Positions 4,566 through 59,077 of a DNA stretch of 64,000 nt are shown here, piece after piece (the first letter of the stretch is position 1; each line of letters begins with the position of its first letter). Position numbers and translations under genes: made by a program. Source of the DNA: Anaeramoeba ignava BMAN (lineage: Eukaryota > Protista > Anaeramoebae); assembly GCA_028826165.1 (NCBI GenBank), contig JAPDFW010000078.1:124001-188000 (forward strand), given 5' to 3'. The notes under the pieces are model-generated. The model was not told where the DNA came from. It made no database searches and saw nothing but the letters and a program-made list of their open reading frames with translations.

Positions 4566-4628
4566 TTATTTCTCTTTCTTTTCTTCTTTCTTTTCTTCTT
4601 TCTTTTCTTCTTTCTTTTCTTCTTTCTT

Positions 4629-4661
<33 letters not shown>

Positions 4662-6458: not shown

Positions 6459-6539
6459 TTTGTTAAAATAAAAATGAAAAAAAAAAAATAAAAAAAATTT
6501 TTTTTTCTCCTTTTTGTTTTTTCTCCTTTTTAATTTAAA

Positions 6540-7675: not shown

Positions 7676-7895
7676 AAAATTCCTTTTTTTCTCCTTTTTT
7701 ATCCTCTTTTTCTTTTGTGGTTTTTCGCCTTTTTAAAAAAAAAAAATTTTTTTTTTTAAATAAAAATCGGACACTTTCTAATTAAAAAATAATTAAAAAA
7801 ATAAAAAATAAAAAAGCAAAAAAAAAAGAAAATCAAAATTTTTAAATTCATTTTCATTTTCATTTTCATTTTTATTTTTGTTTTTATATTTTAGA

Positions 7896-17070: not shown

Positions 17071-17421
17071 AAAATCAAAATTACAATTAAAATCAAAATC
17101 AAAATTAAAATTAAAATCAAAATCAAAATTAAAATTAAAATTAAAATTAAAATTCAAAATTAAAATCTAAATTAAAATCTAAATTAAAATCAAAATTAAA
17201 ATTAAAATCAAAATTAAAATTAATATTAAAATTTAAAATTTAAAATCAAAATTAAAATTAAAATTAAAATCAAAATTAAAATTAAAATTAAAATTAAAAT
17301 TTAAAATTTAAAATTAAAATTAAAATTAAAATTAAAATCAAAATTAAAATTAAAATTAAAATTTAAAATTAAAATTCAAATTAAAATCAAAATCATTTTT
17401 TCATTTTTTTACTTTTCAAAA

Positions 17422-19163
17422 ATGAATGATTGTTTATTTTTTGGTGATAATAGAAATCCTTATTTGATTCTGAATGAACCAGAAAAAATAATAAAACCAA
17501 TTCAATTTAAATTTGAAAATGAAAATGAAAATGAAAATCAAATTAAACAAATTTCAACAGGAGCTTTTGGAATAATTTTCCTTTTTAAAAATGGAAAAGC
17601 AATAGAATATTTTCAACAAAAACCACAAAAAAATGAAATCAAAAAACCTGAACAAATTCCAATTAAAAAAATTAAGAAGATACAATTAAATGGCTCATTT
17701 GCAACAATTTTAACAAAAGAAGGAAATGCATTCATAAGAAAAACATTACTTAATCCAAAAAATCCAAATGAATTTATCAATATTTCATCACAAATCAAGA
17801 AAAAAAAAGATAGAATAATTGAAAATATTGTTTGTGCAAGAAGTTCAGTTTATTTATTAACTTCAAATCATAATGCTTATGGGATTGGTTCAAATGATTT
17901 TGGTCAACTTGGTTTTGATTCTAAAAAACTTAAAAAAACAGAAAAACCAATTTTAATGATGAAAAATGTTTCTAAAATATTTTCAGGAAATTTTTCATAT
18001 TGTGTTTTTCTTTTAAATTCAAATCAAGAATTATTTGTATGCGGTTATAATGGATATGGCCAATTCGGATTAGGAAAATCAATAATACAAAGACAAGTAG
18101 AAAAATTAACCAAAATCCAAAAATATTCCAAAAGGCAAAATAATTGATATTAAATGTGCACATGATCATTCAATAATGTTGATTGAAAATAAAAATCAAA
18201 ATCGAAAATCCAAAAAGAAAACTTTATTCATGTGGAAATTATCAATATAATGGACTTGGCAAATATGATAAAAATACTTATGAATTTACTGAAATCAAAT
18301 CATCTTTATTTGAAAATGATGATATTCTTGAAATTTCTGTTGGAATCTATCATACTTTGATTTTAACATCCAAAGGAAAATTGATTGTATTTGGGTATAA
18401 TTATTATTGTCAATTAGGAACTGGAGATACAAATGATCAATTAATTCCAATTCAAATCAAATTTCCTAAATTAAGATTTAATGAAGATATTTCTAATTAT
18501 CATATTTCTTGTGGAGGATTTAGTTCATTTATTTATTATTCTTCTCCTTCTTTTTCCAATCTTGAAGAAGATTTGATAAAATTATTTGAAAGAAAAGAAT
18601 TTTGTGATATTTCATTTAAAACCAAAAATGGAGAAATAATTGAAGCTCATAAATTAATATTGAAATATAGATTAAATCAAAATGAAAATGAAATTGAAAA
18701 ACTTAAAGAAATTATTTCAAAAAAATCAATTAAAGAATCAAATCAAATATTTGAAATGATTTATTCAAACAGAATAATAAATCCAAAATTATATTCTGAA
18801 ATTAAAGAAATTATAAATTCAAATGAAAAAATTGAAGAAACAATGAAAAGAATTTATTTAAATGAAAATGAAAAAGATTTTATAATTGAAAGAAAAGAAA
18901 AACAATATAAATTTCCAAAATTAATATTAATAATGAGAAGTGAATTATATCGAGGAATGTTTTTATCTGTAACAAATGATAAATCTAATAAAGTTACAGA
19001 TTATAGTGAATTAAGTAATAAATCATTTCAAATATTTGAATATTGGATTTATTCAAATCAAATTAAAGATAAAATTCAAATTACACAACAAATTATTAAT
19101 GAAATTAAAATTGGAATTGATTATTTTCAATTAAATCAAACAAATCCAAATTTATTTATTTAA
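17422..19163 (+). CDS. RCC1-repeat + BTB protein (paralogue 2), frameshifted near 18120
   Basis: ORFs 17422-18147 and 18183-19163 are the two halves of one gene nearly identical to 19429-21200. The break lies in A/C homopolymers (aaaatccaaaaatatt vs aaaatcaaaaatatt). Confidence 0.8.
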
Positions 19164-19428
19164 ATTTTAATTAAAATTAAAATTAAAATCAAAATCAAAA
19201 TCAAAATTAAAATTAAAATTAAAATTAAAATTAAAATTAAAATTAAAATTAAAATTAAAATTAAAATTAAAATTAAAATTAAAATCAAAATTAAAATTAA
19301 AATTAAAATTAAAATTAAAATTAAAATTAAAATTAAAATTAAAATTAAAATTAAAATTAAAATTAAAATTAAAATTAAAATTAAAATTAAAATCAAAATC
19401 ATTTTTTTCATTTTTTTACTTTTCAAAA

Positions 19429-21200
19429 ATGAATGATTGTTTATTTTTTGGTGACAATAGAAATCCTTATTTGATTCTGAATGAACCAGAAAAAATAATA
19501 AAACCAATTCAATTTAAATTTGAAAATGAAAATGAAAATGAAAATCAAATTAAACAAATTTCAACAAGCTTTCTTTCAACAGTTTTCCTTTTTAAAAATG
19601 GAAAAGCAATAGAATATTTTCAACAAAAACCACAAAAAAATGAAATCAAAAAACCTGAACAAATTCCAATTAAAAAAATTAAGAAGATACAATTAAATGG
19701 CTCATTTGCAACAATTTTAACAAAAGAAGGAAATGCATTCATAAGAAAAACATTACTTAATCCAAAAAATCCAAATGAATTTATCAATATTTCATCGCAA
19801 ATCAAGAAAAAAAAAGATAGAATAATTGAAAATATTGTTTGTGCAAAAAATTCAGTTTATTTATTAACTTCAAATCATAATGTTTATGGAATTGGTTCAA
19901 ATGATTTTGGTCAACTTGGTTTTGATTCTAAAAAACTTAAAAAAACAGAAAAACCAATTTTAATGATGAAAAATGTTTCTAAAATATTTTCAGGAAATTT
20001 TTCATATTGTGTTTTTCTTTTAAATTCAAATCAAGAATTATTTGTATGCGGTTATAATGGATATGGCCAATTCGGATTAGGAAAATCAATAATACAAAGA
20101 CAAGTAGAAAAATTAACCAAAATCAAAAATATTCCAAAAGGCAAAATAATTGATATTAAATGTGCACATGATCATTCAATAATGTTGATTGAAAATCAAA
20201 ATCAAAATCAAAACCCAAAAAGAAAACTTTATTCATGTGGATGGTCTCAATATAATGGACTTGGCAAAAATAAAGATACTTATGAATTTACTGAAATCAA
20301 ATCATCTTTATTTGGAAATGATGATATTCTTGAAATTTCTGTTGGAATCTATCATACTTTGATTTTAACATCCAAAGGAAAATTGATTGTATTTGGTGGT
20401 AACTTATATGGTCAATTAGGAATTGAAGGTATATATTATCAATTAATTCCAATTCAAATTGAATTTCCTGAATTAAGATTTAATGAAGATATTTCTAATT
20501 ATCATATTTCTTGTGGAGGATTTAGTTCATTTATTTATTATTCTCCTCCTTCTTTTTCCAATCTTGAAGAAGATTTGATAAAATTATTTAGAAGAAAAGA
20601 ATTTTGTGATATTTCATTTAAAACCAAAAATGGAGAAATAATCAAAGCTCATAAATTAATATTGAAATATAGATTAAATCAAAATCAAAATCAAAATCAA
20701 ATTGAAAAACTTAAAGAAATTATTTCAAAAAAATCAATTAAAGAATCAAATCAAATATTTGAAATGATTTATTCAAACAGAATAATAAATCCAAAATTAT
20801 ATTCTGAAATTAAAGAAATTATAAATTTAAATGAAAAAATAGAAGAAACAATGAAAAGAATTTATTTAAATGAAAATGAAAAAGATTTTATAATTGAAAG
20901 AAAAGAAAAACAATATAAATTTCCTAAATTAATATTAATAATGAGAAGTGAATTATATCGAGGAATGTTTTTATCTGTAACAAATGATACTTCAAATAAA
21001 GTTACAGATTATAGTGAATTAAGTAATAAATCATTTCAAATATTTGAATATTGGATTTATTCAAATCAAATTAAAAATGAAATTCAAATTACACAACAAA
21101 TTATTAATGAAATTAAAATTGGAATTGATTATTTTCAATTAAATCAAACAAATCCAAATTTATTTGATTTATTAATTAAAAATTTAATAATCAAAATTAA
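19429..21200 (+). CDS. RCC1-repeat + BTB protein (paralogue 3)
   Basis: Intact RCC1 blades plus BTB. The ORF runs on to 21351 as KIKIKI, probably because of a missing A at about 21180; paralogues end ...LIKKFNNQN*. Confidence 0.88.
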
Positions 21201-21417
21201 AATTAAAATTAAAATTAAAATTAAAATTAAAATTAAAATTAAAATTAAAATCAAATTAAAATTAAAATTAAAATTAAAATTAAAATTAAAATTTAAAATT
21301 AAAATTAAAATTAAAATTAAAACATTTTTATTTGTTTTAAATTTTAATTAAAATTAAATTAAAATTAAAATTAAAATTTAAAATTACATTTGGAAAATTT
21401 TGTTTTTAATTTTTAAT

Positions 21418-24365
21418 TAATTTAAACGTCCAAGAACTTTTTTTATTCGCTATTTTGAATTTTGAATTATTTGGAAAATTTTGAAGAGAGGATTGCAAAA
21501 TGGAAATACCATTTAAACGTTTAATTTCTTTTTTATTCGCTATTTTAAATTTTGAATTTTGAATTTTGAATTTTGAATTTTAAATTTTGAATTTTGAATT
21601 TTAAATTTACACTTATTTGATGAAAGATTAAATAAAGCTCCACATCCTTTTTCTTGGATATCTTGATTTTTTGGAAAATTAATCATTGTTTTTATAATAA
21701 TTTCAATTCCCATCTTTTCTCTAATTTCATTTTGATTTTCTTTTTTGATTTATTTTTTAAATTAATTTTTGGATTTTGAATTTTTGGATTTTGAATTTAC
21801 TCTTATTCAATGAAAGATTCAATAAAATTCCACATGCATGTTCTTGAATATCTTGATTATTGGGAAAATTAGTCATTGCTTTTATAATTGTTTCAATTCC
21901 TTTCTTTTCTTTAATTTCATTTTGATTTTCTTTTTTTTTTAAATGGATTTTAATTTTAAATTTTGATTTTGATTTTGAATTTGAATTTGAATTACGATCA
22001 TTAACTGAAAGATTCAATAAAGCTCCACATGCTTTTTCTTGAATACCTTTCTTTTTTGGAAAATTAGTCATTGTTTTTATAATTGTTTCAATTCCTTTCT
22101 TTTCTTTAATTTCATTTTGATTTTCTTTTTTTTTTAAATTGATTTTGATTTTAATTTTAAATTGAAATTTAAATTTGAATTTTAAATTACGATCATTAAA
22201 TGAAAGATTCAATAAAGCCCAACATCCTTTTTCTTGAATAACTTTCTTGTCTTTTGAATCATTCATTGCTTTTATAATTGTTTCAATTCCTCCTTGTTTT
22301 CTAATTTCATTTTGATTTTCTTTTTTTTTTTTAATTGATTTTAATTTTAAATTGTATTTTTTTGTTTGTTTTTGTTTTTTTACCAGAATCAATTGCAATA
22401 TTGATTAAATTTGAAATGGATTTTTCTTGAATCAAAATATTATTTGGGAAATTATTGATTGCATTAATTAATAATTGAATCCCATGAAATTTTGCAATTT
22501 GAATTCCTTGAAGTTTTCTTTTTTCAAGTTTATCTCCTGTTTAGAATTTTTTTAAAAAGAAAAAAAAGAAAATGAAATAAAAGAAAAGAAAAAAATCAGT
22601 TACTTTCTAAATCACCTGAAAATGTAAGTAAAACTGAAGATGCTTTTGTTTGAATATCTGAATTATTGCTGAAATTACTCATTGCATTCAATAAAGGTTG
22701 AATTGCTTTTGTGAATTCATTTCCAATATCTGAATCTTTTTGTTTTTATAATGATAAAGAAGAAAGTTACTTCAAATTTTGATTTCCAAAAAAAAAAATT
22801 CAGAACAAAATTTTACTTTGATTTTCCTTTCCAAATTTTTCTAGAATCAAACAAGAATTTTCTTGAATTTCTTGATTTTGTGGAAATTGAAGCATGTATT
22901 TTATTGTGTCTTCAAATGATTCTTTGTAAAATTTTTATGTATTTTTCGTTTTTTTGTTTTTGATTTTGAAAATCAATTAGGATTTTGAATATTTTTTTTT
23001 TTGAATCCAAAAAAATTTTTACTTTGATTTAATTTGGTTTCATTTTGAAAATTTTGCAACTCTTTGATTGCCTTTTTTTCTGGTTGAAGATTTTCAAGCA
23101 TAATTTCCAATTGTTTTATCTGATTTTCTTTTTCTTGGATTTCTTTTTCTTGCTCATTGAGTTTTTTTGATTGAGCTTTAATTTTTTCATCTTGGATTTT
23201 ATTATTATTTTCCAGTTTTTCAATTTGTTTTTGTAAATTTTGATTGTTTTGATTCATTAATTCAAGTTGATGAGTTGAAGGCAAAATGGGATTTTTTTGA
23301 GTTTTTAAATCAAAAGAAATCTTTCGAGAATTTTTGATGTTATCAATAACAAAATAAAAATTATCAACTTCATTTTTCATTTCTTGAATTTGGATTGGAT
23401 CGACATATTTGTCTTTATCTAATAAATTTGGTTTATTTTTTTCGAATTTTGCTTTCCAATCTTTAGCCAATTTCCAAATCATATCTATTCTTTTATCTTT
23501 TGATGTTGATTGGATAATTTCAATGATTTTTTTTAGTTCATTGTCAGTGATCTCTCCAGTTTGATCTTCTTGGATAATTTTATCAATATTTTCTTTCATA
23601 AAATTTTCACAAAAATTGGAAAGATAAGTTGATTCAATTTTGATACTTTTGAAATATATAACAATAGTGTTTGTTGTATTGACTTTTTCTGAAACTTCTT
23701 TTTCAATTTTAATTGTTAAACTTGTTAATTTAAAATATTTTGCGAGTTGGAAATATTTTTCGAATTTTTTTAAATCAAAATTGAATTGTGAATCATAAAA
23801 AAAAGAGATGATTGGTTCAACAATATCAAATTCAAATTTTGCGAGATATAATTCATTGCTATCTGGGTTTTCATGATGTTTTTCATAGAAAAACCTCGAA
23901 GATGCATTAAGGATTAATTGATGACAAAATATCTTTTGATTTGTTTTTCCAGCATAAATTACAAAATCACATTTTTCTTCATTTTGGAACATTTTTTTAT
24001 AATTTGAAAGATGCTCACAAATTAAAAATTTATTAAATTCTTGAGAAGGAAATTGATATAATTTTGAGATTCTGATATTTTTAGATGTTTTGTGAGAATA
24101 AATTTCTTGAAATGAAATTTTTTTTTCCTCTTTTTTCTTTTTTTCTTTTTTTTCTTTTTTTTTGTGATTTTTTTTAACCAATTTAAAACTTTTGTGCATT
24201 TTTTCCTTTTTTTTCTCTTTTTCCTTATTTTCCTCCTTTTTCTTTTTTTCTTTTTTTTCATTTTTTTTTAACCAATTTAAAACTTTTGTGCATTTTTTCC
24301 AGATTAGATTTCCTTTTTTCCTTTTTTTCCAGTTGAGGTTTACTTAGTATAAAGGATCTGTTCAT
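21418..24365 (-). CDS. BTB + coiled-coil + Armadillo-repeat protein (multi-exon, several apparent frameshifts)
   Basis: BTB (KCDFVIYAG...IFCHQLILNASSRFF) and coiled coil in ORF 22973-24199. ARM exons follow (ENQNEIRKQGGIETIIKAM...IQEKGCWALLNLSFND), each bounded by GTAA donors and AAAG acceptors. Exact joins around 22740-22980 and 24200-24365 are unresolved. Confidence 0.6.
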
Positions 24366-24425
24366 CTTTTATTTAAAAAAAAATGAAAGAAAAAAATTAA
24401 AAATTAAAATTAAAATTAAAATTAA

Positions 24426-26205
24426 AAAATTAAACAAATTTTTTGATTTTGATTTTGATTTTGATTTTGATTATTAAATTTTTTAATTAATAAATCAAAT
24501 AAATTTGGATATGTTTGATTTAATTGAAAATAATCAATTCCAATTTTAATTTCATCAATCATTTCTTGTGTAATTTTAATTCCATCTTTAATTTGATTTG
24601 AATAAATCCAATATTCAAATATTTGGAAATGATTTATTACTTAATTCACTATAATCTGTAACTTTATTAGATTTATCTTCAGTTACAGATAAAAACATTC
24701 CTCGATATAATTCACTTCTCATTATTAATATTAATTTAGGAAATTTATATTCTTTTTCTTTTCTTTCAATAATAAAATCTTTTTCATTTTCATTTAAATA
24801 AATTCTTTTCATTGTTTCTTCAATTTTTTCATTTGAATTTATAATTTCTTTAATTTCTAAATATAATTTTGGATTTATTATTCTGTTTGAATAAATCATT
24901 TCAAATATTTGATTTGATTCTTTAATTGATTTTTTTGAAATAATTTCTTTAAGTTTTTCAATTTCATTTTCATCTTTTAATCTATATTTTAATATTAATT
25001 TATGAGCTTTAATTATTTCTCCATTTTTGGTTTTAAATGAAATATTACAAAATTCTTTTCTTTCAAATAATTTTATCAAATCTTCTTCAATATTGGAAAA
25101 AGAAGAAAGAAAAGGAGAATAATAAAGAAATGAACTGAAATATCCACAAGAAACATGATAATTGGAAATATCTTCATTAAATCTTAATTCAGGAAGTTTG
25201 ATTTGAATTGATTTTGTTTGATTATTTGTATCTCCAGTTCCTAATTGACCATAAGTATTATTTCCAAATACTATTAATTTTGAATTAGATGTTAAAATCA
25301 AAGTATGTTCAAATCCAACAGAAATCTCAAGAATATTATCATTTTCAAATAAAGATGATTTGATTTCAGTAAATTCATAACTATTTGTTCCAAGTCCATT
25401 ATATCGAGACCATCCACATGAATAAAGTTTTCTTTTTGGATTTTGATTTTCATCTTTCAATCAACATTATTGAATGATAATATCCACATTGAATATCAAT
25501 TATTTTGCCTTTTGGAATATTTTGGATTTTGGTTAATTTTTTGATTCTTGTTTCTTCTTTTCTTGATTCTCCTAATCCAACTTGAGTATCACCATTATAT
25601 CCGCATACAAATAATTCTTGATTTGAATTTAAAAGAAAAAGATGATTTGAAGAATTTCCTGAAAATATTTTAGAAACATTTTTCATCATTAAAATTGGTT
25701 TTTCTGTTTTTTCAAGTGTTTCAGAATCAAAACCAAGTTGACCCCAATAATTTGAACCAATTCCATAAGCATTTTGATTTGAAGTTAATAAATAAGTTGA
25801 ATAAGCTCCAGAAACAACATCTTTAATTACTCTATCATTTATATCTTCAATTAATGATGAAATATTGATAAATTCATTTGGATTTTCTGGATTTATAACT
25901 TTTCCTTTGGCAAATACATTTCCTTCTTTTGTTAAAATAGCTTCATTTTCAAAACCAACAGTTACTTTTTGAATATTTTCAATTTGGATTTTTGAAGGAT
26001 TTTTTTTTGAATATTCTATTGCTTTTCCATTTTCAAAAAGGAAAATTGTTGAGAAACCTCCTGATGAAATTTGTTTAATTTGTTTTTCATTTTCATTTTC
26101 ATTTTCATTTTCAAATTTAAATTGAATTGGTTTTGTTATTTTATTTGGTTCATTTTTGATAAGTTTTGGAAATTTGTTCCAACCAAAAAATAAACATTCA
26201 TTCAT
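24426..26205 (-). CDS. RCC1-repeat + BTB protein (paralogue 4), frameshifted near 25455 and 24625
   Basis: ORFs 25450-26205 and 24615-25460 together align with paralogue 5. Confidence 0.8.
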
Positions 26206-26359
26206 TTTTTGAAAAGAAAAAAATGAAAAAATGAATTTTGATTTTAATTTTAATTTTAATTTTAATTTTGATTTTGATTTTAATTTTAATTTTAATTTTA
26301 ATTTTAATTTTAATTTTAATTTTAATTTTAATTTTAATTTTAATTTTAATTTTAATTTT

Positions 26360-28114
26360 AATTTTGATTATTAAATTTTTAATTAATAAATCAAATAAAT
26401 TTGGATTTGTTTGATTTAATTGAAAATAATCTATTCCAATTTGAATTTCATCAATTATTTCTTGTGTAATTTGAATTTCATCTTTAATTTGATTTGAATA
26501 AATCCAATATTCTAATATTTGAAACGATTCATTACTTAATTCACTATAATCTGTAACTTTATTAGATTTATCTTCTGTTACAGATAAAAACATTCCTCGA
26601 TATAATTCACTTCTCAGTATTAATATTAATTTAGGAAATTTATATTGTTTTTCTTTTCTTTCAATTATAAAATCTTTTTCATTTTCATTTAAATAAATTC
26701 TTTTAATTGTTTCTTCAATTTTTTCATTTGAATTTATAATTTCTTTAATTTCATAATATAATTTTGGATTTATTATTCTGTTTGAATAAATCATTTCAAA
26801 TATTTGATTTGATTCTTTAATTGATTTTTTTGAAATAATTTCTTTAAGTTTTTCAATTTCATTTTGATTTTGATTTAATCTATATTTCAATATTAATTTA
26901 TGAGCTTCAATTATTTCTCCATTTTCTGTTTTAAATGAAATATTACAAAATTCTTTTCTTTCAAATAATTTTATCAAATCTTCTTCAAGATTGGAAAAAG
27001 GAGGAGAAGAATAATAAATAAATGAAGTGCCAAATCCACAAGAAATATGATAATTGGAAATATTTTCATTAAATCTTAATTTAGGAAGTTCAATTTGATT
27101 TGGAATCGATTTTGTTTGATTATTTGTATCTCCAGTTCCTAATTGACCATAAGTATTATTTCCAAATACTATCAATTTTGAATTAGAAGTTAAAATCAAA
27201 GTATGTTCAAATCCAACAGAAATCTCAAGAATATAATCATCATCTTCAAATAAAGATGATTTGATTTCAGTAAATTCATAAGTATTTGTTCCAAGTCCAT
27301 TATATCGAGACCATCCACATGAATAAAGTTTTCTTTTTGGATTTTGATTTTGATTTTCATTTTCAATCAACATTATTGAATGATAATATCCACATTGAAT
27401 ATCAATTATTTTACCTTTTGGAATATTTTGAATTTTGGTTAATTTTTCGATTTTTGCTTCTTCTTTTCTTGATTCTCCTAATCCAACTTGAGTATCACCA
27501 TTATATCCGCATCCAAATAATTCTTGATTTGAATTTAAAAGAAAAACATGAATTGAAGTATTTCCTGAAAATATTTTAGAAACATTTTTCATCATTAAAA
27601 TTGGTTTTTCTGTTTTTTTAAGTGTTTTAGAATCAAAACCAAGTTGACCAAAATGATTTGAACCAATTCCATAAATATTATGATTTGAAGTTAATAAATA
27701 AACTGAATAAGCTCCAGAAACAATATCTTCAATTATTCTATCATTTGTATCTTCAATTAATGATAAAATATTGATAAATTCTTTTGGATTTTTTGGATTA
27801 ATATCTCTTCCTTTTGCAAATACATTTCCTTCTATTGTTAAAATAGCTTCATTTTCAAAACTAACAGTTACTTTTTGAATACTTTCTTCAATTTGGATTT
27901 TTGAAGGATTTTGATTTAAATATTCTATTGCTTTTCCATTTTTAAAAAGGAAAATTGTTGAAAAACCTCCTGTTGAAATTTGTTTAATTTGTTTTTCATT
28001 TTCATTTTCATTTTCATTTTCAAATTTAAATTGAATTGGTTTTGTTATTTTATCAGGTTCATTTTTGATAAGTTTTGGATATTCATTTCTTCCAAAAAAT
28101 AAACAATCATTCAT
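26360..28114 (-). CDS. RCC1-repeat + BTB protein (paralogue 5)
   Basis: ORF 26198-28114; the KIKIKI tail is run-through into the (AAAATT)n spacer, and the real stop is probably near 26360. Confidence 0.88.
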
Positions 28115-28174
28115 TTTTGAAAGAAAAAAATGAAAAAAAATGAAAAAATGATTTTGGAATTTTATTTTTAATTT

Positions 28175-29905
28175 TTAAATGAAATAAGTCTCAAGTTCAT
28201 CAACAACCCATGAATTAAAAGAACCGGCTAAGTAATTTTTTGCTTCATTTGTATTATAATCAATTCCATTAGGTAGATTATAACTATTGCCAAAATCTGA
28301 ATAACCAGATTGTAAATTAGATTTTAAACCAATATCGCCATTATGTCCAAATCTTGGACCAGAACTAGAAAGATAATAAATTGCATATTTTTCTTGACCT
28401 TGTTTAATGGTAAATTTATTTGGTTCTCGATCTCCTTTATCATTTCTTAACGAAAAAATAAATGCATTTGAATCACTAATCCATTCTCCACTTGTTGATT
28501 GTTTAAATCCAACTTGAGTAAATCCTCCAAAAATAAAATTATCTTTTGTTTTTATAATAACTAATGTTTTTCCTTTATCATCACAAATATCATGCCATTT
28601 CTTACAATCAAATCCGTCTCTTTTTGCTGAAAATCCTTTTTTCATTTTATAAAAAAAATTATTATCATTTATCCATTCTTGTAATTTCTGAGTATATTCT
28701 TCTTCTGTAACAATTTCTGAATCTGAAAGAATTTTGAGTTTTCTCGCTTCCTTTTTCATTTTCTCAACTTCTGATTTCAAATTTTGATTCTCTTTTTCTT
28801 TCTTTTGATTTTCAAATTTCAAATCTTGATTCTCTTTATCTTTCTTTTGATTTTCCAATTTGATATTTTGATTCTCTTTATCTTTCTGTTCATTTTCCAA
28901 TTTCAAATCTTGATTCTCTTTTTCTTTCTTTTGATTTTCAAATTTAATTGACTTAATCCTTTTATCTCTTCTTTTGATTTTCTTTTCTTTCTCTTTCATT
29001 TCTTTCTCTTTAACCTGAATAACCTTGTTTTGAATATCAATTAAAAAGGAATTTGGAAGAAAATTATTAAATTGATTTAATTTATCAAAATCTTGTTTTG
29101 AAATTGAATCTTTATCAAATAATGAAAAAAAAGAATGAAATAATCTCTTCTTTTCAATTTCCTTTTCTTTTTCTTTCTTCAATTTTAATCTCTTGTTTCT
29201 TTTTTTAACCCAATTATTTAAAAATTCAAAAAAATCAAATTGAAAAATTTCTTTTTTTTCTTGTTTAAATTGAATAAATTTGATAACTTCTTCTTTAGTT
29301 AAATTGAATAAATTCTCATTTTTCTGAATTTGGGAAAAATTTTGATTTATTAATTCAAAACATTTCATTTCAATTTCTTTTAATTTTAAATTTCGATTTT
29401 GGAAAAAAAATTGGAAAAAATTTGAATAATTAATTGAATTTGAAATTTTTTTTTCAAGAATTTTTTTCAATAAATTTAATTGAAAATAAATTGAAATTTC
29501 CATTAATTGGAGAAGATTTTCTTGATTCTCAAAAGAAATATCTCCATGATAAATATAACTCAAAATTGATTTCATTTCTTTTTTATTAAATTGCCTCAAA
29601 AAAATATCCTCAGTTCTTTTTGTTCCTTGTAAAAAACCATGAAAAAAAGGAGATCTTGAAGATAAAATTGATTTATGAACTTTAAATTCAAAAGGATTTG
29701 ATTTATTCTCAACAAAAATTGAAAAATCTTTAAATGAATTTTCTTTTAAAAGGTTTGAATAATCTTCAGCCAAATTTTTTGTTACTTTTTTTTCTAAATT
29801 TTTCATTTCATTTTCATTTTGATTTTGATTTTCATTTTGATTTTGATTTTGATTTTCATTTTGATTTGCATTTTCAATTTCAATTTGATTATTATTATTA
29901 TCCAT
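28175..29905 (-). CDS. BTB/POZ + coiled-coil + TLDc domain protein
   Basis: BTB (FKDFSIFV...FKVHKSILSSRSPFF) and TLDc (FSAKRDGFDCKKWHDICDDKGKTLVIIKTKDNFIFGGFT...DSNAFIFSL...GPRFG...VDELETY). Confidence 0.92.
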   Translation of the reverse strand: MDNNNNQIEIENANQNENQNQNQNENQNQNENEMKNLEKKVTKNLAEDYSNLLKENSFKDFSIFVENKSNPFEFKVHKSILSSRSPFFHGFLQGTKRTEDIFLRQFNKKEMKSILSYIYHGDISFENQENLLQLMEISIYFQLNLLKKILEKKISNSINYSNFFQFFFQNRNLKLKEIEMKCFELINQNFSQIQKNENLFNLTKEEVIKFIQFKQEKKEIFQFDFFEFLNNWVKKRNKRLKLKKEKEKEIEKKRLFHSFFSLFDKDSISKQDFDKLNQFNNFLPNSFLIDIQNKVIQVKEKEMKEKEKKIKRRDKRIKSIKFENQKKEKENQDLKLENEQKDKENQNIKLENQKKDKENQDLKFENQKKEKENQNLKSEVEKMKKEARKLKILSDSEIVTEEEYTQKLQEWINDNNFFYKMKKGFSAKRDGFDCKKWHDICDDKGKTLVIIKTKDNFIFGGFTQVGFKQSTSGEWISDSNAFIFSLRNDKGDREPNKFTIKQGQEKYAIYYLSSSGPRFGHNGDIGLKSNLQSGYSDFGNSYNLPNGIDYNTNEAKNYLAGSFNSWVVDELETYFI

Positions 29906-30054
29906 TTTGTTTTTTGTTTTTTAAAAAAAAAAGGAAAAAAATGAAAAAAATTTAAATAAAAAATATTTTTTTCCTTTTTTTGGAAATTAAATTTATATAA
30001 AAAATGAGAATAAATTTAAATTAATAATTAATTTAATTTTCTTTTTTATTTATT

Positions 30055-30550
30055 ATTTTAAATTAATTTATAAATTAAATATTAAATTAAATCTATTTTC
30101 ATTTTTTATATTTATATGTTAAATATTTAAATAATAAAATATTTAAATCTAAAACAATAAATTATTATTTTAATAATAAAATTAAATATTAAATTATATT
30201 TTTAAATTAATTTATAAATTAAATATTAAATTAAATCTATTTTCATTTTTATATTTATATGTTAAATATTTAAATAATAAAATATTTAAATCTAAAACAA
30301 TAAATTATTATTTTAAACATAAAATTAAATATTAAAAATTAAATATTTTTAAATTGATTTATAAATTAAATATTAAAAATTTAAATCTATTCTTATTTTT
30401 ATATAAAATTTTATATTTTAAAATATTTGAAATAATAAAATATTTAAATCTAAAACATTAAATTATTATTTTAATAATAGAATTAAATATTAAATTATAT
30501 TTTTAAATTATTTTATAAATTAAATATTAAATTAAATCTATTCTTATTTT
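30055..30550. repeat. About 145-bp AT-rich tandem repeat, about 3.3 copies
   Basis: Units begin near 30061, 30205, 30351 and 30506 (aattaatttataaattaaatattaaattaaatctatt...tctaaaaca). Confidence 0.8.
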
Positions 30551-30555
30551 GTCAA

Positions 30556-30884
30556 GAAAATGAAAAAGATTTTATAATTGAAAGAAAAGAAAAACAATAT
30601 AAATTTCAAAATTAATATTAATAATGAGAAGTGAATTATATCGAGGAATGTTTTTATCTGTAACAAAAGATAAATCTAATAAAGTTACAGATTATAGTGA
30701 ATTAAGTAATAAATCATTTCAAATATTTGAATATTGGATTTATTCAAATCAAATTAAAAATGAAATTCAAATTACACAAGAAATAATTAATGAAATTAAA
30801 ATTGGAATTGATTATTTTCAATTAAATCAAACAAATCCAAATTTATTTGATTTATTAATTAAAAAATTTAATAATCAAAATTAA
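30556..30884 (+). pseudogene. 5'-truncated RCC1-BTB fragment (C-terminal BTB only)
   Basis: Starts abruptly at ENEKDFIIERKEKQYKF directly after the 145-bp repeat, has a frameshift at about 30607 and lacks the RCC1 part. Confidence 0.7.
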
Positions 30885-30977
30885 AATTAAAATTAAAATT
30901 AAAATTAAAATAAAAATTCATTTTTTCATTTTTTTTCTTTCATCAAAAATTTTTTTTCATTTTTTTTCTTTTCAAAA

Positions 30978-32765
30978 ATGAATGAAATTTTATTTTTTGG
31001 TTTAAATCAACTCCCAAAACTTATCAAAAATGGACCAAATGCAATAACAAAACCAATTCAATTTAAATTTGAAAATGAAAATGAAAATGAAAATGAAAAT
31101 GAGAATGAAAAGCAAATTAAACAAATTTCAACAGGAGATTTTTCAACAATTTTCCTTTTCAAAAATGGAAAAGCAATAGAATATTTAAAATATTCAAAAC
31201 AAAAATCCTGAAAAAATCCAAATTGAAGAAAATATTCAAAAGTAACTATTGGTTTTGAAAATGAAGCTATTTTAACAAAAGAAGGAAATGTATTTGCAAA
31301 AGGAAGTTATATTAATCCACAAAATCCAAATGAATTTATCAATATTTCATCATTAATTGAAGATACAAATGATAGAATAATTGAAGATATTGTTTCTGGA
31401 AGAAGTTCAATTTACTTATTAACTTCAAATCAAAATGTTTATGGAATTGGTTCAAATGAAGAAGGTCAACTTGGTTTTGATTCTGAAACACTTAAAATAA
31501 CAGAAAAACCAATTTTAATGATGAAAAATGTTTCTAAAATATTTTCAGGAAATTCTTCAATTCATGTTTTTCTTTTAAATTCAAATCAAGAATTATTTGG
31601 ATGCGGATGGAATGAATATGGTCAAGTTGGATTAGGAGAATCAAGAAAAGAAGAAGAATCCAAAATTCAAAATATTCCAAAAGGCAAAATAATTGATATT
31701 AAATGTGGATTTTCTTATTCAATAATGTTGATTGAAAATGAAAATGAAAATGAAAATCCAAAAAGAAAACTTTATTCATGTGGAGATTATCGATATAATG
31801 GACTTGGCCAAAATGAGAAAACTTATGAATTTACTGAAATCAAATCATCTTTATTTGAAAATGATGATAATATTCTTGAGATTTCTGTTGGATTTAAACA
31901 TACTTTGATTTTAACATCTAATTCAAAATTAATAGGATTTGGAGAAAATTTATATGGTCAATTAGGAACTGGAGATACATATTGGAATCAATTAATTCCA
32001 ATTCAAATTGAACTTCCTGAATTAAGATTTAATGAAGATATTTCTAATTATCATATTTCTTGTGGATATTTCAGTTCATTTCTTTATTATTATTTTCCTC
32101 TTTTTTCCAATCTTGAAGAAGATTTGATAAAATTATTTGAAAGAAAAGAATTTTGTGATATTTCATTTAAAACCAAAAATGGAGAAATAATCAAAGCTCA
32201 TAAATTAATATTGAAATATAGATTAAATCAAAATCAAAATAAAATTGAAAAACTTAAAGAAATTATTTCAAAAAAATCAATTAAAGAATCAAATCAAATA
32301 TTTGAAATGATTTATTCAAACAATTCTAAAATAAATCCAAAATTATATTCTGAAATTAAAGAAATTATAAATTCCAATGAAAAAATTGAAGAAACAATGA
32401 AAAAAATTTATTTAAATGAAAATGAAAATGAAAAAGATTTTATAATTGAAAGAAAAGAAAAACAATATAAATTTCCCAAATTAATATTAATAATGAGAAG
32501 TGAATTATATCGAGGAATGTTTTTATCTGTAACAGAAGATAAATCTAATAAAGTTAGAGATTATAGTGAATTAAGTAATAAATCATTTCAAATATTAGAA
32601 TATTGGATTTATTCAAATCAAATTAAAGATGAAATTCAAATTACACAAGAAATGATTGATGAAATTCAAATTGGAATTGATTATTTTCAATTAAATCAAA
32701 CAAATCCAAATTTATTTGATTTATTAATTAACAAATTTAATAATCAAAATCAAAATCAAAATTAA
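30978..32765 (+). CDS. RCC1-repeat + BTB protein (paralogue 6), frameshift near 31200
   Basis: ORF 30978-31211, the intervening frame and ORF 31518-32765 form one gene; the break lies in an A-run. Confidence 0.82.
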
Positions 32766-52197: not shown

Positions 52198-53936
52198 TTA
52201 TAAAAAATTTCTTAATTCTTCAAGAATTTTTCGATTTAAAAAAGCAACCATTTGAGAAGAAGGAAGAAAACCAAACAAAGAAAAAAACTCAAAGCAATTT
52301 GCATTTTTATGTTGAGGAACAAGTTGCTTTCTTAAATTTCTGTAAAAATTTGAAGAAAAAACTAAATTTCGAGAATTTTCAATAACAAATTCTTTATAAG
52401 GTTCAATTCTTTCATGATTTTCATCTTCAAACCAAAGTTGGTAAGAATAGAAAAATGGAGATGAATTTGAAATTGCATAAAGATTGCCATTATATAATGA
52501 TTTTTGAGCAAAATCACACACTTTCCAAAATTCTTGTTTGATATCATCTTTTGATAACAATTTTTGTTTAAAATCAAAGTGCACATTTTTCTTCCTCATT
52601 TTCTTTGGTATTTTTAATGAAAACCCACTAATTTTTGGTTTAACCATTGTGTTTTTTGTGCGATTAATTAAAACAAAGTGCAAAATTCCTGGATATAATT
52701 TGATATAAGAAGAAATTGTGAATTCTGGAATTGGAAGAATATTCAAATAGTTTCTGATTGTAAATTTGAATTTCTCAGCAATTTCTCTCATTTTTTTTCT
52801 TTGAGCTTCTTGTGCAATTTCTTGGTATTCAGGATCAATTATAAAAACTAAAAATAGTGAATCCATAAGTTTTGCTGAATAAACAGGAAAAGATTGTTCT
52901 TCTGGTTGAGAGAAATACAGCATTTCTTGAGAATCATGTAAAATTGATCTATATTCAAGACTTTGAGCATTATTTGAAATCAAGTTTTCGTCTTTTTCTT
53001 TTTCTTTTTCTTTTCTATTTTTATATTTTTATATTTTAATATTTTAATATTTATTTAATATTTTAATATTTATTTAATATTTAAATATTTTTATATTTTA
53101 TACTCATCATCTTGTTCTTGTTGCACTTTTTCATGAAGAAATGAACTTGTGGAAATCATACTATCATTCATATCAACTTCCAAATCAGAATTATCACTAG
53201 TTTTTTCATTTTCTAAAGCAAATTGATCAACAAATTTATCATCACTATTTTCCGTTTTAGATTTCTTTTTAAAATTATCTTCAAAATGAAATAAACTTTC
53301 CAAATAAATCATTAAATTCAAAAGATCATTTTCATTCACAATCAATTTATGTTTTTTTTTAGATTTGACTTGAGATAAAATCTTAAGATCAGAAAACAAA
53401 AAAGCTTGCAAAATACCATCATTTTGATAAACAGTGTCTTGCAAAAAAGTATGGAATTGAACATATAAAGATTTATTTCGAGTTGCCTCCAAAGAATGGA
53501 GTCTAAAATTCTGGAAATTATCACACAAATAATTATAACTGTGAATTAATTTATGGATTTCTTGTTTAACTGAAGCTTGAATTTGTCGAGATTGTTGAAG
53601 ATTTTTGAAATATTCTTTTCCAAATCGAAAAAGGAAAATATTATGAATTATATTTAGTTGATGAATTGAAAAAATAAATGGTTCTTCCTTTGTTGTCAAA
53701 ACTAAAAAAATCACATTGTCAAAATTAATTGTAATTAAACTTGATTTTTCTGCTTTTATAATTTCTAATTTTTCATTTAATTTGTGAAGAATTGTATTGC
53801 ATGTTAAAAATGGTAAAATTAATGCATCATATCTTATTTCTTTTAAATCCCATTTCCTTTTTTTTGCTTGTTGGGGATCAAGTTGTTGATGAAAAATTGG
53901 AAGACCTAATTCATTTGTAATATGAAATCTTTTCAT
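52198..53936 (-). CDS. HPS1: HPS1 (BLOC-3 subunit, tri-longin family) homologue, 2 exons
   Basis: Exons 53936-53104 and 53014-52198 splice in frame. N-terminal longin start (FHITNELGLPIF). C-terminal HPS1-type motifs YPGILHFVLINRT..MV.P, FFYSYQLWFED and FYRNL...CFEFFSL. Confidence 0.8.
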
Positions 53937-53994
53937 TTTTATTATTAATTAATTAAAAAAGAAAAAAAATGAAAAAAAATAAAATTAAATTAAA

Positions 53995-54290
53995 TTAAAA
54001 AGATTTTCTCCTTTTTTTTTTTTTAATTAAATTTTCTCCTTTTTTACGTTAAAAAAAAATAAAATTAAAACTTAGAATTAAACTTAGAATTAAATTTCGA
54101 AATTATTCCTTTTAATAAATTTAATCAAAAATGGTCAAAATTCTTTTTATTTTTCTTTTGTTTAACGTTTTTTTTTTTTTAATTAATTAAATAATTAAAA
54201 AATTTTTTTTTGTTTTTTTTTTCAATTATATTTTTTCATTTTTTTTTCTTGTTGTTTCTTCTTCTTCTTTTTTTTTGGTTTTTTTTTTAA
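53995..54290. promoter_or_regulatory. Short bidirectional promoter region (HPS1 / ankyrin gene) with TTCTCCTTT and TCATTT motifs
   Basis: About 350 bp between divergent ATGs. TTTTCTCCTTT at about 54004 and 54032; tttttcattttt at about 54233. The same motifs recur upstream of other genes in the window. Confidence 0.4.
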
Positions 54291-57200
54291 ATGGTAATAA
54301 AGAATAAATTTTAAATTTTAAATTTTAAATTTTAATTTTAATTTTTAATTTTAATTTTAGTCTAACAAATTAATTGAAGCGATCAAATCAGGAGATATTA
54401 AACTTATAGAAGAACTTATTAAGAATGGAACTAATGTTAAAGTTTTTGATGTAAAAAAAAAATTTTTTTAATTTAAAAAAAATTTAAATTCATTTTAAAA
54501 AAGAAAGAATAATTAAAAAATATTTTAATATTTTATTCTACTTTTTATTTCCAATATAATTTCTTTTTCCTAAATTTCTCTTCTTCTCTTTTTTTTTATT
54601 ACAGGAAGTAATTATTTTAGTTAATCAAGAAAAATTAAATCAAATCAAATCAAATCAAATCTAAATTAAATTAAATTTCAAAAGAATGTAAAAAAAAAAC
54701 AAAAAGGAATTTTTAAGTTAAATGATTTAATATAAAAAAAATTATTATGATTAATTTTCATTTCATTTAGAAAATTACTCCATTGCATTATGCAAGTGGA
54801 TTAGAAATTGGACCTGAAATTATTCCTCTTCTTATTAATGCTGGAGCACGAGTTAATGCAATTGATGTGAATTTATATTTAAATTTATATTTAAATTTAA
54901 ATTTTTTTAATAAAAAAAAAATCTTTAATATTAATCATTTTAAATAGAAAGTATTTTCAAAAAAAGTTTAAAATGAAATTCAATCAAAAAAGATATATTT
55001 AAAAATTTATAAAAATCCCTTCAAATTTTTATAATTTGAAAACATTTTAGTTTGTAAATTTTTTTCATTTAATTTTTATTACAAAAAATTTTGTTTATAT
55101 TTTTTTTAAAAAAAATTTTTTAGAAAAATACTCCTTTACATTATGCTTTTGAAAGTAAATCTGCATTTGAGAATTCCAAATTACTCATTTCTGCAAATGC
55201 AAATGTGAATGCAATAAATGTAATTGGGATAAATATAAATATTTAAAATATAAATATAAATTCTATAATTTTTTTTAGATTGTAAAATTTTTTTTATAAC
55301 AAAGATATTTAAAATCAAATTTAAAATCAAATTTAAAATTAAATTTAAAATCAAATTTAAAATCAAATTTAAAATTAAATTTAAAATTAAATTTAAAATC
55401 AAATTTAAAATTAAATTTAAAATTAAATTTAAAATTAAATTTAAAATCAAATTTAAAATCAAATTTAAAATTAAATTTAAAATTAAATTTAAAATCAAAT
55501 TTAAAATTAAATTTAAAATCAAATTTAAAATTAAATTTAAAATCAAATTTAAAATCAAATTTAAAATCAAATTTAGCATCAAATTTAAAATTAAATTTAA
55601 AATCAAATTTAAAATCAAATTTAAAATCAAATTCTAAAATCAAATTTAAAATCAAATTTAAAATCAAATTTAAAATCAAATTTAAAATCAAATTCAAAAT
55701 CAAATTTAAAATCAAATTTAAAATCAAATTTAAAATCAAATTCAAAATCAAATTTAAAATCAAATTCAAAATCAAATTTAAAATCAAATTTAAAATTAAA
55801 TTTAAAATCAAATTCAAAATCAAATTTAAAATCAAATTTAAAATTAAATTTAAAATTAAATTTAGCATGTAAATTAATATATAAATCAAAAAAAAAAAAT
55901 AATAATTGAATAATTTGTTTACTTTTTGCATCATTTTTATATCAAAATAGAAAGCAACTCCTCTTCATTATGCTTGTGAAAATGGAATGGAATTTAAAAT
56001 TATACAATTATTACTTGAAGCAAAAGCTCAAACTGATATAATTAATGTAATTAAAAAATTTGAAAGAAAAAGAATTTTTTAATTTTTATTTTTTAATTTT
56101 CTTAATTTTAAAATAGGATGTTTGTTTTATTATTTTATAATCATTGTTCAATAATTTTTTTTTTTACATTCTGTAAATTATTTAATGTTAAATTTTTATT
56201 CATTTCAATTATTTTTTTTTAGGATGTAAATTTAATAATTTTCAGAAAAAAATATTTTTGTTTAAAAATATAAATTATTTTAAAAATAAAAAGAATAATC
56301 ATCCTTTAAATTGTGCGATTATTGGAGGATGTGAGAATGAAATAATTAATGCTTTAATATCTGCTAATTCTCCAGTGAATCTACCTGAAAATGTAAATTA
56401 AATTTTATTTTTAAATAAAAAAATATTTTGTTTGATTTATTCTTTTTTTTCGAAATAAAAAAGAGCATTCCACCACTTCAATTAGCTTTAAAGAATAAAA
56501 GAGATATAGATATTATTAAATCTTTGATTGTTGCTGGAGCAAATATTAACTCTAGAGATGTATTTAATTAAAATTTAATTTTTTATATTTAATTGAAATT
56601 TAATTTTTTATATTTAATTGAAATTTAATTTTTTATATTTAATTGAAATTTTAGTCAGTAATAAATTTTATTTTAACTCAAAGAAAAAAAGATTTTTTTT
56701 TAATTTTTAATTTTTAATTTTTAATTTTTAATTTTTAATTTTTAATTTTTAATTTTTAATTTTTAATTTTTAATTTTTAATTTTTAATTTTTAATTTTTA
56801 ATTTTTAATTTTTAATTTTTAATTTTTAATTTTTAATTTTTAATTTTTAATTTAGCTTGTAAATATTTTTTTTTGAAAATTTTATTATGAATAAATAAAT
56901 ATTTATTTAAATTTAAATAGATGAATACGCCTCTTCATGAGGCTTGTAATACTAAATGTTCCTCAGAGATCTTGAAACTTCTCATATCATTAGGAAGTGA
57001 TGTTAATGCAATAAATGTAAATTTATTATATCGAAAAATTCTTTTAAAAAGTTTTTCTTTTCATTAAATTTATTTTTTTTTATTGAATATTAATTTTAGG
57101 ATGTAAATTTAAAAAAAAAATGAAATTATTTATTTTTATATCAATATTTTCTTTTTCTTTTTAGTTTGTAAATATTTCATTTCATTTTATTTTATTTAGT

Positions 57201-59077
57201 AATTTTGATCTAAAAAAATATTCCTAACTTTCTTTTTTTTGAAAAAAAAAAATAATAAAAATAATAATATATGTATATATAAAATATAAAGGAATTATCT
57301 CCTCTTCATATTTTAATTGAAAATGATATAGATTTTTCTGTTGTTGAAATGATTCTTGATTCCGGTGCTGATGTTACATTAACATCTGTATTAATAATTG
57401 ATAATAATAAAAAATAATAATTATAAAAATTAATTTGAAAAAATTTTTTTGTTATTTTTAGTACGTAAATTATTTTACAATAAAAAAAATTAATTATTAT
57501 TAAAAATTTTAAATTATTTTATTTTTATTTCTAGGATGTTTGAATTAAAATATTTTTTTTAGAATGAAAATAATCTTGATTTATTTAAATTTTTTGTTTT
57601 AAAAAAATGTTTTAGAGAAGAACTGTTCTTCATTATGCTTGTATGAAGAAGGTTCCACTTGTGATTATTCAGAAAATACTACAAAATGGAGCTGATGTTA
57701 ATGCAACTGATGTAAATTTATTTTAATTTTAATTTTAATTTTTAATTTTTAATTTTTAATTTTTAATTTTTAATTTTTAATTTTTAATTTTTAATTTTTA
57801 ATTTTTAATTTTTAATTTTTAATTTTTAATTTTTAATTTTTAATTTTTAATAGGATGTAAAAATTTATTATTATTTAAAAAAATTTTTGATTTTATAATT
57901 TATTTATATAATTTATTTTAGTTCAATAATACACCACTTCATGCAGCTTGTCAATGGAATGCTCCACTTGATAATATTAAATTGTTATTAGATTCTGCTT
58001 CTGATGTTAATGCAACAAATGTAAAAATATTTTTATTTTTTGAATTTGTTATTTTTATTTTTATTTTTATTTTTATTTTTTTTAGCGAGTCGTAAAATTT
58101 GTTTTTTATATTTAAAATTAGAATTTTAAAAAAAAAACTTTATTTAATGATTTTAGAAAGATACACCTCTTCATTGTGCTTGTAGAGGTGAGACAATACC
58201 TGATGTTATTGATTTACTTGTTTCTTATGGAGCTGATCCAAATTCTCGAGCTGTAAAAAATTAAATTAAAAAATTAAATTAAATATAAAATATAAAATAT
58301 AAAAATATAAATATTAAAAAATATAAAAATATAAAAATATAAAAATATAAAAATAAAAATATTAAAAATATAAAATATAAAATATAAAATATAAAATATA
58401 AAAATATAAAAATATAAATATAGGCTGTAATTTTGTTTAATTAAATTTATTTTTGTATTTTTATTAATTTTTATTACTTTTTTTAGTGGGTTTGAAAAAA
58501 TGAAAATTTAAAAAATTTTTTCTTCAATTTGGATTAGATGTTTATTATTTTTATTATGATTTTTTTTTCAATCATTAGGATAAAACTCCACTTCATATTG
58601 CATGTGAATATAATTCATCAATTGATGTAATTGAAGCTTTATTAAAGAATGGTGCTCGTGTTGATGCTGAAGATGTAATTAATTTTATTTGTTTTAATTA
58701 ATATGATTTATTTATTTTAATTTTTAAATATAATTTAGATTGTAATTTTGATTTCTATTTAATTTATCAAATTAATTTAATTTAATTTAATTTAATTTAA
58801 TTTAATTTATTTTTAGGATGTAAATTTTAATTTTAATTTTAAATTTTAATTTTAATTTTAATTTTAATTTTGATTTTAATTTTAATTTTAATTTTAATTT
58901 TAATTTTGATTTAAATTTTAATTTTAATTTTAATTTTAATTTTAATTTTAATTTTAATTTTAATTTTGATTTAAATTTTAATTTTAATTTTAATTTTAAT
59001 TTTAATTTTAATTTTAGGGAAAAACTCCAATTCAATTTACTCAAGATGGAGAAATTATGAAAGTTTTGCAGAAATAA
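54291..59077 (+). CDS. Ankyrin-repeat protein (about 12 repeats, about 425 aa) encoded by 34 phase-0 exons, including 20 microexons
   Basis: ATG exon 54291-54293. Repeat exons 54361-54450, 54771-54866, 55124-55219, 55951-56046, 56294-56392, 56464-56559, 56921-57016, 57292-57387, 57616-57711, 57922-58020, 58157-58252, 58579-58674 and 59018-59077, with xxTPLH.A.......I..LL..GA.VNA.D pattern. All are bounded by AG/GT. Not in the ORF track. Confidence 0.9.
54605..58819 (+). other. Set of AG-NNN-GT microexons in the ankyrin gene
   Basis: GAA 54605, AAT 54685; AAA 54948, TTT 55051; ATT 55279, CAT 55866; GAT 56117, GAT 56223; TCA 56655, CTT 56856; GAT 57100, TTT 57165; TAC 57462, GAT 57535; GAT 57854; CGAGTC 58086; GCT 58424, TGG 58487; ATT 58739, GAT 58817. 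Confidence 0.85.

Follow-up and report, generated by a model that had tools for sequence, protein, structure and literature searches.

The ankyrin gene at 54292-59077 on the + strand of a 64-kb stretch of DNA from Anaeramoeba ignava BMAN (the window, whose positions are used for all coordinates unless a locus is named) raises the question of where two residues of every repeat are encoded, as the exons that carry its ankyrin repeats seem to be two codons too short. The introns between these exons contain "islands" in which a 3' splice site and a 5' splice site are separated by a single codon. Very probably a 96-nt exon and two exons of only 3 nt together encode each 34-residue repeat, with the islands being included in the mRNA.

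Layout of the ankyrin gene

The window is very A+T-rich eukaryotic DNA, which uses the standard genetic code, as is shown by an open reading frame (ORF) of 2,228 codons without in-frame stops. The ankyrin gene has 13 large exons, all of which are phase-0 and intact: a 90-nt N-terminal cap, 11 repeat exons and a 60-nt terminal exon that includes a TAA stop. The initial annotation of this DNA, made from the sequence alone, had described phase-0 repeat exons that start two residues before TPLH, and this description holds, with 9 of the 11 being 96 nt long and two being 99 nt long; they end on the D or N of 'VNxxD'. When single-codon exons are counted, the locus can with high probability be read as a gene of ankyrin repeats only, with 34 exons, 33 introns and 425 codons, against 404 if the islands are left out, in which the tiny exons would account for 63 of 1,278 coding nt (Table 1).

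The start codon has been placed in an upstream exon because the second exon has an in-frame TAG directly upstream of it. The coding part of the first exon would seemingly be ATG alone, followed by an intron of 66 nt (ATG|gtaata ... ttttag|TCT; window 54292-54360), and the predicted N-terminus M-SNKLIEAI is similar to the MNELIQAI of P0085, a sister protein described below.

All but one of the 33 implied introns are 59-198 nt in length, the exception being 584 nt long and taken up by a microsatellite with a 12-mer unit; the shortest agrees with the minimum of about 59 nt given previously. Their A+T content of 92.1% (over 3,571 nt) fits the value published for A. ignava introns, 91.86%, in a genome that is 80.65% A+T (PMC11550330). 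Long 12-mer, 7-mer and 6-mer microsatellites nearly fill the introns at 55305-55860, 56697-56853, 57720-57850, 58260-58420 and 58830-59015, and the islands at both ends of the 584-nt intron have kept perfect splice contexts.

Two residues are missing from each repeat

Searches with the window gene made use of single exons, stored database proteins or an alignment of its exons. Of ten single exons, seven pass the gathering score of Pfam Ank (PF00023), 21.1 bits, with scores of 22.9-33.1 bits, and two others come just short of it at 20.6-20.8 bits. In this 33-position model residue 2 or 3 of the 96-nt exons falls at position 3 or 4 and the last residue of each falls at position 32, so that the exons cover positions 2/3 to 32 and positions 33 and 1 are absent at each junction; these are the two residues that the initial annotation had found to be missing when the exons are joined directly. 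The 99-nt exon at 57922 has its residue 2 at Pfam position 2, one step ahead of the 96-nt exons. The two 3-nt exons of each repeat would therefore encode the residues of positions 33 and 1, which form the beta-hairpin tip and are the x-x of the D-x-x-G-x-TPLH consensus.

The same shortfall is seen when the gene is compared with 50 long intronless ankyrin ORFs of A. ignava, in which the spacing from TPLH to TPLH is 33-39 residues (32 in 0 of 172 cases) and the N of 'GAxVN' is separated from the T of 'TPLH' by a distance of 8 in 86 of 92 cases, with no case under 8. If its islands are left out, the window gene has a spacing of 32 and a distance of 6; counting them raises these values to 34 and 8, and a full ankyrin repeat length is thus reached only if the predicted islands are included.

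Islands are paired, sense-specific and confined to one spacing

The motif AG-NNN-GT occurs at 24 sites in the gene region, 20 of them intronic and four within large exons, and we read the intronic set as 19 ag|NNN|gt islands and one ag|NNNNNN|gt island. As previously claimed, nine inter-repeat intervals out of 12 contain exactly two islands each, and every one of the nine junction peptides given for them is correct. The remaining three intervals differ in an orderly manner. Interval 9 has one island and its downstream exon, which is 99 nt long, opens with the "missing" codon; interval 10 has one island that is best read as 6 nt (CGAGTC, then gtaaaa), a reading preferred because the sum per repeat is then kept; interval 5 has no island and a 99-nt exon upstream. 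The coding sum per repeat is 102 nt in three arrangements (96+3+3, 96+3+fused 3 and 96+6) with a single exception (99+0), and these three arrangements with their constant sum act as internal controls.

When sense-strand sites of the form AG-N(k)-GT are counted in the 3,571 nt of intron for k of 0-15, there are 20 at k=3 and 0-3 at each other k; the antisense strand of the same introns has two at k=3, and in 2,000 dinucleotide-preserving shuffles the mean at k=3 is 0.87 and the maximum is 5. Across the 64-kb window TAG-NNN-GTA is found 14 times on the + strand, all within the ankyrin gene, and twice on the - strand. G or C is present in 15 of 21 island codons, where the intron composition predicts 22% (p ~2e-6). 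The borders are ag/gt at all 20 islands, the acceptor is TTTAG at 12 of 19, and the donors are of the GTAA, GTAT or GTTTG type. It is true, as was stated originally, that none of the 19 triplets is a stop, but taken alone this is weak evidence (p ~0.05 against AT-rich background sites in the window); among chance AG-NNN-GT sites just 3' of the gene, three of six are TAA.

It could be argued that the islands are chance matches, or that they are non-coding ratchet points for recursive splicing, as motifs that nearly resemble splice sites are generally abundant in A/T-rich DNA, and this is the only point in favour of such a view. Given 20 observed sites against 0.87 in the shuffles, and a spacing confined to 3 with one case of 6, the probability of this explanation is negligible. 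Zero-length ratchet points are absent, since no AG|GT site (k=0) occurs in the 3,571 nt of intron.

Single-codon exons in a sister transcript

Library proteins were screened for the abnormal 32-residue TPLH spacing. Among those recovered are two NCBI genome models of A. ignava in which 96-nt exons are joined directly, P0051 and P0085, and both skip the islands, as standard annotation had been expected to do. P0028, which also has the 32-residue spacing, was rejected as an unrelated intronless gene.

P0085, to which NCBI gives the name 'ankyrin repeat-containing protein [Anaeramoeba ignava]', can be placed exactly on 96-nt exons of contig C114 of G000, the genome that holds the window; in a six-frame search its C-terminal 255 residues match this contig at 97%, with two stops inside the matched stretch. 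Two unannotated islands lie in each of six introns of this gene. At its locus (L090, G000:C114:134000-139600) the model has at 2719-2766 a 48-nt "exon" (FSLLFNFAKIYLSSGL) in an interval with a GAT island, which looks like an annotation artefact arising from missed microexons.

P0051 (KAJ5073982.1, 771 aa) combines ankyrin repeats with a kinase and its gene lies on G000:C72 (locus L092). It shares a 90% cluster with P0381 (EukProt EP01156_Anaeramoeba_ignava_P006249, 792 aa), whose source name, 'a348135_112.p1 ... ORF type:complete', follows the style in which TransDecoder names ORFs from de novo transcript contigs, and on our reading of that name P0381 derives from a transcript. All 771 aligned positions of the two proteins are identical (771/771); they differ by 11 insertions in P0381, amounting to 21 residues and all located at inter-repeat junctions. 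The insertions are LE, NS, KD, ND, KY, D, EI, KI, IY, LN and QD, and the AG-NNN-GT islands in successive introns of L092 translate as LE, NS, KD, ND, KY, D, EI, KI, IY, LN and D. The simple island rule predicts 20 of the 21 extra residues in order, and all 20 islands of L092 are used. The single-residue insertion adjoins a 99-nt downstream exon, the same fused variant as in interval 9 of the window gene. Single-codon islands are spliced into the mRNA of this sister gene, and the annotation that joins 96-nt exons directly is wrong where a transcript exists.

The window candidates (n=19) resemble the 20 verified exons of L092 in their common GTAAxx and GTATTT donors and in the unusual GTTTGA donor, in having TTTAG as the majority acceptor and in having GAT as the commonest codon. 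The T/C content of the upstream tract is 0.74 in the window gene and 0.68 in the verified set, and the introns are 59-198 nt and 57-171 nt long respectively. Because the signals match those of verified exons, we consider it very likely that the islands of the window gene are spliced into its mRNA also.

The islands might alternatively be unused in the window gene, with the 96-nt exons being joined directly or the locus being a silent or decaying copy. In favour of this, the sequencing runs described below gave no RNA evidence for the window locus, and the NCBI models of the sister genes do join 96-nt exons directly; yet this style of annotation has been shown to be wrong where there is a transcript, all exons of the window gene are intact, introns of 92% A+T would not retain unused islands at exactly two per interval and on one strand, the sense strand, and the complementary variants (the fused codon and the 6-nt exon) keep the 102-nt sum. 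Disuse of the islands is therefore highly unlikely.

A further alternative is that the islands are optional cassette exons, which would be skipped independently of each other to give many isoforms that differ at the target-binding hairpin tips. Each island preserves the frame, so that any subset could be skipped in frame; the tip codons differ widely from repeat to repeat, and in designed ankyrin repeat proteins (DARPins) the two hairpin-tip positions are among those that contact the target. Against this, the ORF of the sister transcript has 20 of 20 islands with none skipped, and skipping would leave hairpins two residues short, a length never seen in the intronless ankyrin genes of A. ignava. 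Optional use thus seems unlikely, and there is only a slim chance that splicing generates combinatorial binding surfaces, with ~2^20 in-frame isoforms of the window gene, as a natural counterpart of a designed ankyrin library. Constitutive use is favoured over combinatorial skipping because of the full inclusion in the one available transcript.

Several points count against this reading of the window gene. RNA support consists of one assembled transcript of one sister gene, and an assembled contig reflects the dominant isoform only. Two sequencing runs compared with 53900-55310 gave only low-complexity fragments, with a depth of zero on three exons, a result that is uninformative either way. 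No transcript-derived or public protein model of the window gene was retrieved: a search of protein representatives with one exon ranked long multi-repeat ankyrin proteins without the product of the window gene among them, and a profile of the window gene exons on a non-ankyrin scaffold from the window found nothing in the protein library at E<=1e-20, which is no evidence of absence (in a local test the same exon profile ranked the window gene exons first, with 404 against 200 bits). The simple island rule is incomplete, as one extra residue of P0381, the Q, has no canonical island. Finally, neither the 6-nt exon nor the ATG-only start has a verified precedent. These two features, together with the missing RNA of the window gene, account for the residual doubt.

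The exceptional Q belongs to the Q-D inserted at the last ankyrin junction of P0381, at intron 8441-8717 (reverse-complement coordinates) of L092 (G000:C72:368400-378399, reverse strand). In this intron D alone has a canonical island (aag|GAT|gtaaaa) and no CAA or CAG is flanked by AG...GT, and for this reason the Q would come from a non-canonical or differently split exon.

Islands across the A. ignava genome

Other A. ignava loci with one ankyrin repeat per exon also have a sense-strand spike at k=3 (with 15, 7 and 6 islands), which is absent at the intronless ankyrin loci compared. In the 42.8-Mb genome the stringent context TTTAG-N(k)-GTAAAT is found 332 times at k=3, 123 times at k=2 and 66 times at k=4, the counts at k=2 and k=4 lying partly in satellite arrays, and none of the 100 k=3 sites listed is a stop triplet. 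Among the first 100 mixed matches listed there are ~9 of TTTAG-GTAAAT (k=0) and ~15 at k=2, many of the latter in satellite arrays.

A comparison of ankyrin genes with controls had been suggested at the outset, on the argument that islands equally frequent elsewhere would speak against their being exons. Each fifth listed match was taken so as to keep the sample unbiased, giving 20 sites at k=3 and 20 at k=4 as a control, and ankyrin exons were sought within 1 kb. Same-strand ankyrin exons are present at 15 of the 20 k=3 sites and at 2 of the 20 control sites (Fisher p = 7e-5), and the ankyrin exons near the k=3 sites are on the same strand in every case. Islands at k=3 thus go with ankyrin genes, and the argument against their being exons fails. 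No ankyrin exon was detected near the other five sampled TTTAG-NNN-GTAAAT sites (L046, L051, L052, L057 and L063, on G000 contigs C2, C29, C31, C57 and C64), which could be chance sites or microexons of other gene families.

Large inverted duplications that contain ankyrin genes of the microexon type are found on G000:C69 at ~301-304 kb and 408-411 kb (L036/L037) and also on C61 and C46. The L036 and L037 copies differ by ~2% substitutions and many microsatellite indels, with identical exons and islands; at ~2% divergence this identity is powerless as a test.

Comparison with Anaeramoeba flamelloides

Proteins of Anaeramoeba flamelloides and A. ignava are ~37% identical (PMC11550330). The A. 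flamelloides gene for P0159 (locus L089, GCA_028892595.1 JAOAOG010000040.1) has single-repeat exons, mostly of 102 nt, that start with the two hairpin codons (e.g. K-T-G-D-TPLH) and end at the same intron position as in A. ignava. As the L089 exons are 102 nt and the A. ignava units sum to 102 nt, the repeat unit is one of 34 codons in both species. Relative to A. flamelloides A. ignava would have two extra introns per repeat unit, which may reflect either gain in A. ignava or loss in the other lineage. No enrichment at k=3 was seen at the two A. flamelloides loci examined, which suggests that splitting of the repeat unit may be peculiar to A. ignava.

The public A. flamelloides model has two short junctions, at 10121-11017 of L089 and in a 7.6-kb intron at 1930-9558; in these an 81-nt exon ending ..ENGAN is followed by a 96-nt exon, and the second junction reads ..NVNQLN|KISALH. 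Despite the absence of k=3 enrichment at L089, A. flamelloides may also have a few small exons that have been missed.

A proposed route of splicing

The proposal of the initial annotation that the islands are single-codon exons is supported by the spike at k=3, its restriction to the sense strand, the 102-nt sum, the two missing Pfam positions and the sister transcript. The tiny exons would be spliceosomal exons of the ordinary kind: their acceptors are T-rich, their donors are of the GTAA type and their ag...gt borders are canonical, and with such borders ordinary spliceosomal splicing is the parsimonious view. As acceptor and donor lie only 3 bases apart, too close for simultaneous occupancy, it is likely that the introns are recognised singly, by intron definition, and are spliced out in turn. 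Once the first of them is gone, the codon would be joined to a large exon and would then behave like a normal exon end. Inclusion would be constitutive and would restore a hairpin of normal length.

Relation to known systems

The initial annotation knew of no described gene of this kind, and in the literature searched there was no paper that combines Anaeramoeba with microexons and none on single-codon exons that recur in pairs at one set position of a protein repeat. Human ANK genes have repeat exons of 99 nt. Genes with one ankyrin repeat per exon share with the A. ignava genes a phase-0 exon for each repeat and an intron after the D or N of 'VNxxD', but an A. ignava repeat appears to have an extra intron after each of its first two codons (3 + 3 + 96 instead of 102).

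In the micro-exon genes (MEGs) of schistosomes, too, introns alternate regularly with numerous tiny, frame-symmetric exons of 3-81 bp (PMC10526429). In MEGs, however, the micro-exons make up most of the coding sequence, which is far from the predicted proportion in the window gene, and the products are secreted, largely disordered and varied by exon skipping; the tiny exons of the window gene would almost all be 3 nt and located at one fixed position of a folded repeat, and in genes of its type they appear to be constitutively included, judging from the one available (sister) transcript. Isolated microexons of animals, plants and fungi are also spliceosomal exons of 1-3 nt with canonical borders that annotation misses (PMC8831610, PMC4674806, PMC12940212). 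A gene has one or a few of these, and they are often regulated, whereas in A. ignava there would be about 20 per gene, paired, in dozens of genes, with the 332 genome sites coming from one stringent 11-base context alone. Recursive splicing resembles the present case in that a 3' splice site is followed almost immediately by a 5' splice site within what is annotated as a single intron, which is probably removed stepwise; its ratchet points are of zero length (AG|GT) and add nothing to the mRNA, whereas here the spacing is one codon and the codon is kept in the verified gene. The machinery is ordinary, and it is the scale and the regularity that are extreme.

An exon of 3 nt is near the lower limit of what the spliceosome can handle and is normally a rare curiosity; A. 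ignava would have about 20 in one gene and hundreds or more genome-wide, placed with codon precision at one structural position of the repeat. The layout is a natural system in which to study the recognition of splice sites 3 bases apart and the order of intron removal, and it poses the question of whether it originated when each repeat acquired two additional introns or when a single split unit was amplified. The public A. ignava proteome would also mispredict a whole class of ankyrin proteins by dropping residues that are expected to contact targets, an error inherited by comparative and structural work on these families.

Features of the window

Table 1. Predicted exons of the ankyrin gene (window positions; island borders are given as acceptor|exon|donor)
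Feature	Position	Strand	Context or remark
Start codon ATG, coding end of exon 1, gtaata directly after	54292..54294	+	inferred
Large exon, 90 nt, N-terminal cap, ends ..VKVFD	54361..54450	+	single occurrence in genome
3-nt exon GAA (E)	54605..54607	+	cag|GAA|gtaatt
3-nt exon AAT (N)	54685..54687	+	aag|AAT|gtaaaa
Repeat exon, 96 nt (KITPLH..NAID)	54771..54866	+	Pfam Ank positions 4-32 of 33
3-nt exon AAA (K)	54948..54950	+	tag|AAA|gtattt
3-nt exon TTT (F)	55051..55053	+	tag|TTT|gtaaat
Repeat exon, 96 nt (KNTPLH..NAIN)	55124..55219	+	Pfam Ank match
3-nt exon ATT (I)	55279..55281	+	tag|ATT|gtaaaa
3-nt exon CAT (H), downstream of 584-nt microsatellite intron	55866..55868	+	tag|CAT|gtaaat
Repeat exon, 96 nt (KATPLH..DIIN)	55951..56046	+	Pfam Ank match
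3-nt exon GAT (D)	56117..56119	+	tag|GAT|gtttgt
3-nt exon GAT (D)	56223..56225	+	tag|GAT|gtaaat
Repeat exon, 99 nt (NNHPLN..NLPEN); next intron 71 nt without island	56294..56392	+	
Repeat exon, 96 nt (SIPPLQ..NSRD)	56464..56559	+	Pfam Ank match
3-nt exon TCA (S)	56655..56657	+	tag|TCA|gtaata
3-nt exon CTT (L)	56856..56858	+	tag|CTT|gtaaat
Repeat exon, 96 nt (MNTPLH..NAIN)	56921..57016	+	Pfam Ank match
3-nt exon GAT (D)	57100..57102	+	tag|GAT|gtaaat
3-nt exon TTT (F)	57165..57167	+	tag|TTT|gtaaat
Repeat exon, 96 nt (ELSPLH..TLTS)	57292..57387	+	exon layout
3-nt exon TAC (Y)	57462..57464	+	tag|TAC|gtaaat
3-nt exon GAT (D)	57535..57537	+	tag|GAT|gtttga; unusual donor also in transcript-verified set
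Repeat exon, 96 nt (RRTVLH..NATD)	57616..57711	+	Pfam Ank match
3-nt exon GAT (D), sole island of interval 9	57854..57856	+	tag|GAT|gtaaaa
Repeat exon, 99 nt (FNNTPLH..NATN), first codon = fused second hairpin residue	57922..58020	+	Pfam Ank
6-nt exon CGAGTC (R-V); alternative = 3-nt CGA, donor gtcgta	58086..58091	+	tag|CGAGTC|gtaaaa
Repeat exon, 96 nt (KDTPLH..NSRA)	58157..58252	+	Pfam Ank match
3-nt exon GCT (A)	58424..58426	+	tag|GCT|gtaatt
3-nt exon TGG (W)	58487..58489	+	tag|TGG|gtttga
Repeat exon, 96 nt (DKTPLH..DAED)	58579..58674	+	Pfam Ank match
3-nt exon ATT (I)	58739..58741	+	tag|ATT|gtaatt
3-nt exon GAT (D)	58817..58819	+	tag|GAT|gtaaat
Last exon, 60 nt including TAA stop (GKTPIQ..VLQK*)	59018..59077	+	

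Elsewhere in the window, a cluster of at least six paralogous and almost intron-free genes that combine RCC1 repeats with a BTB domain occupies 14630-32765 on both strands. Several genes of this cluster are split into two ORFs, and BTB-only and BTB-TLDc-like genes are also present.

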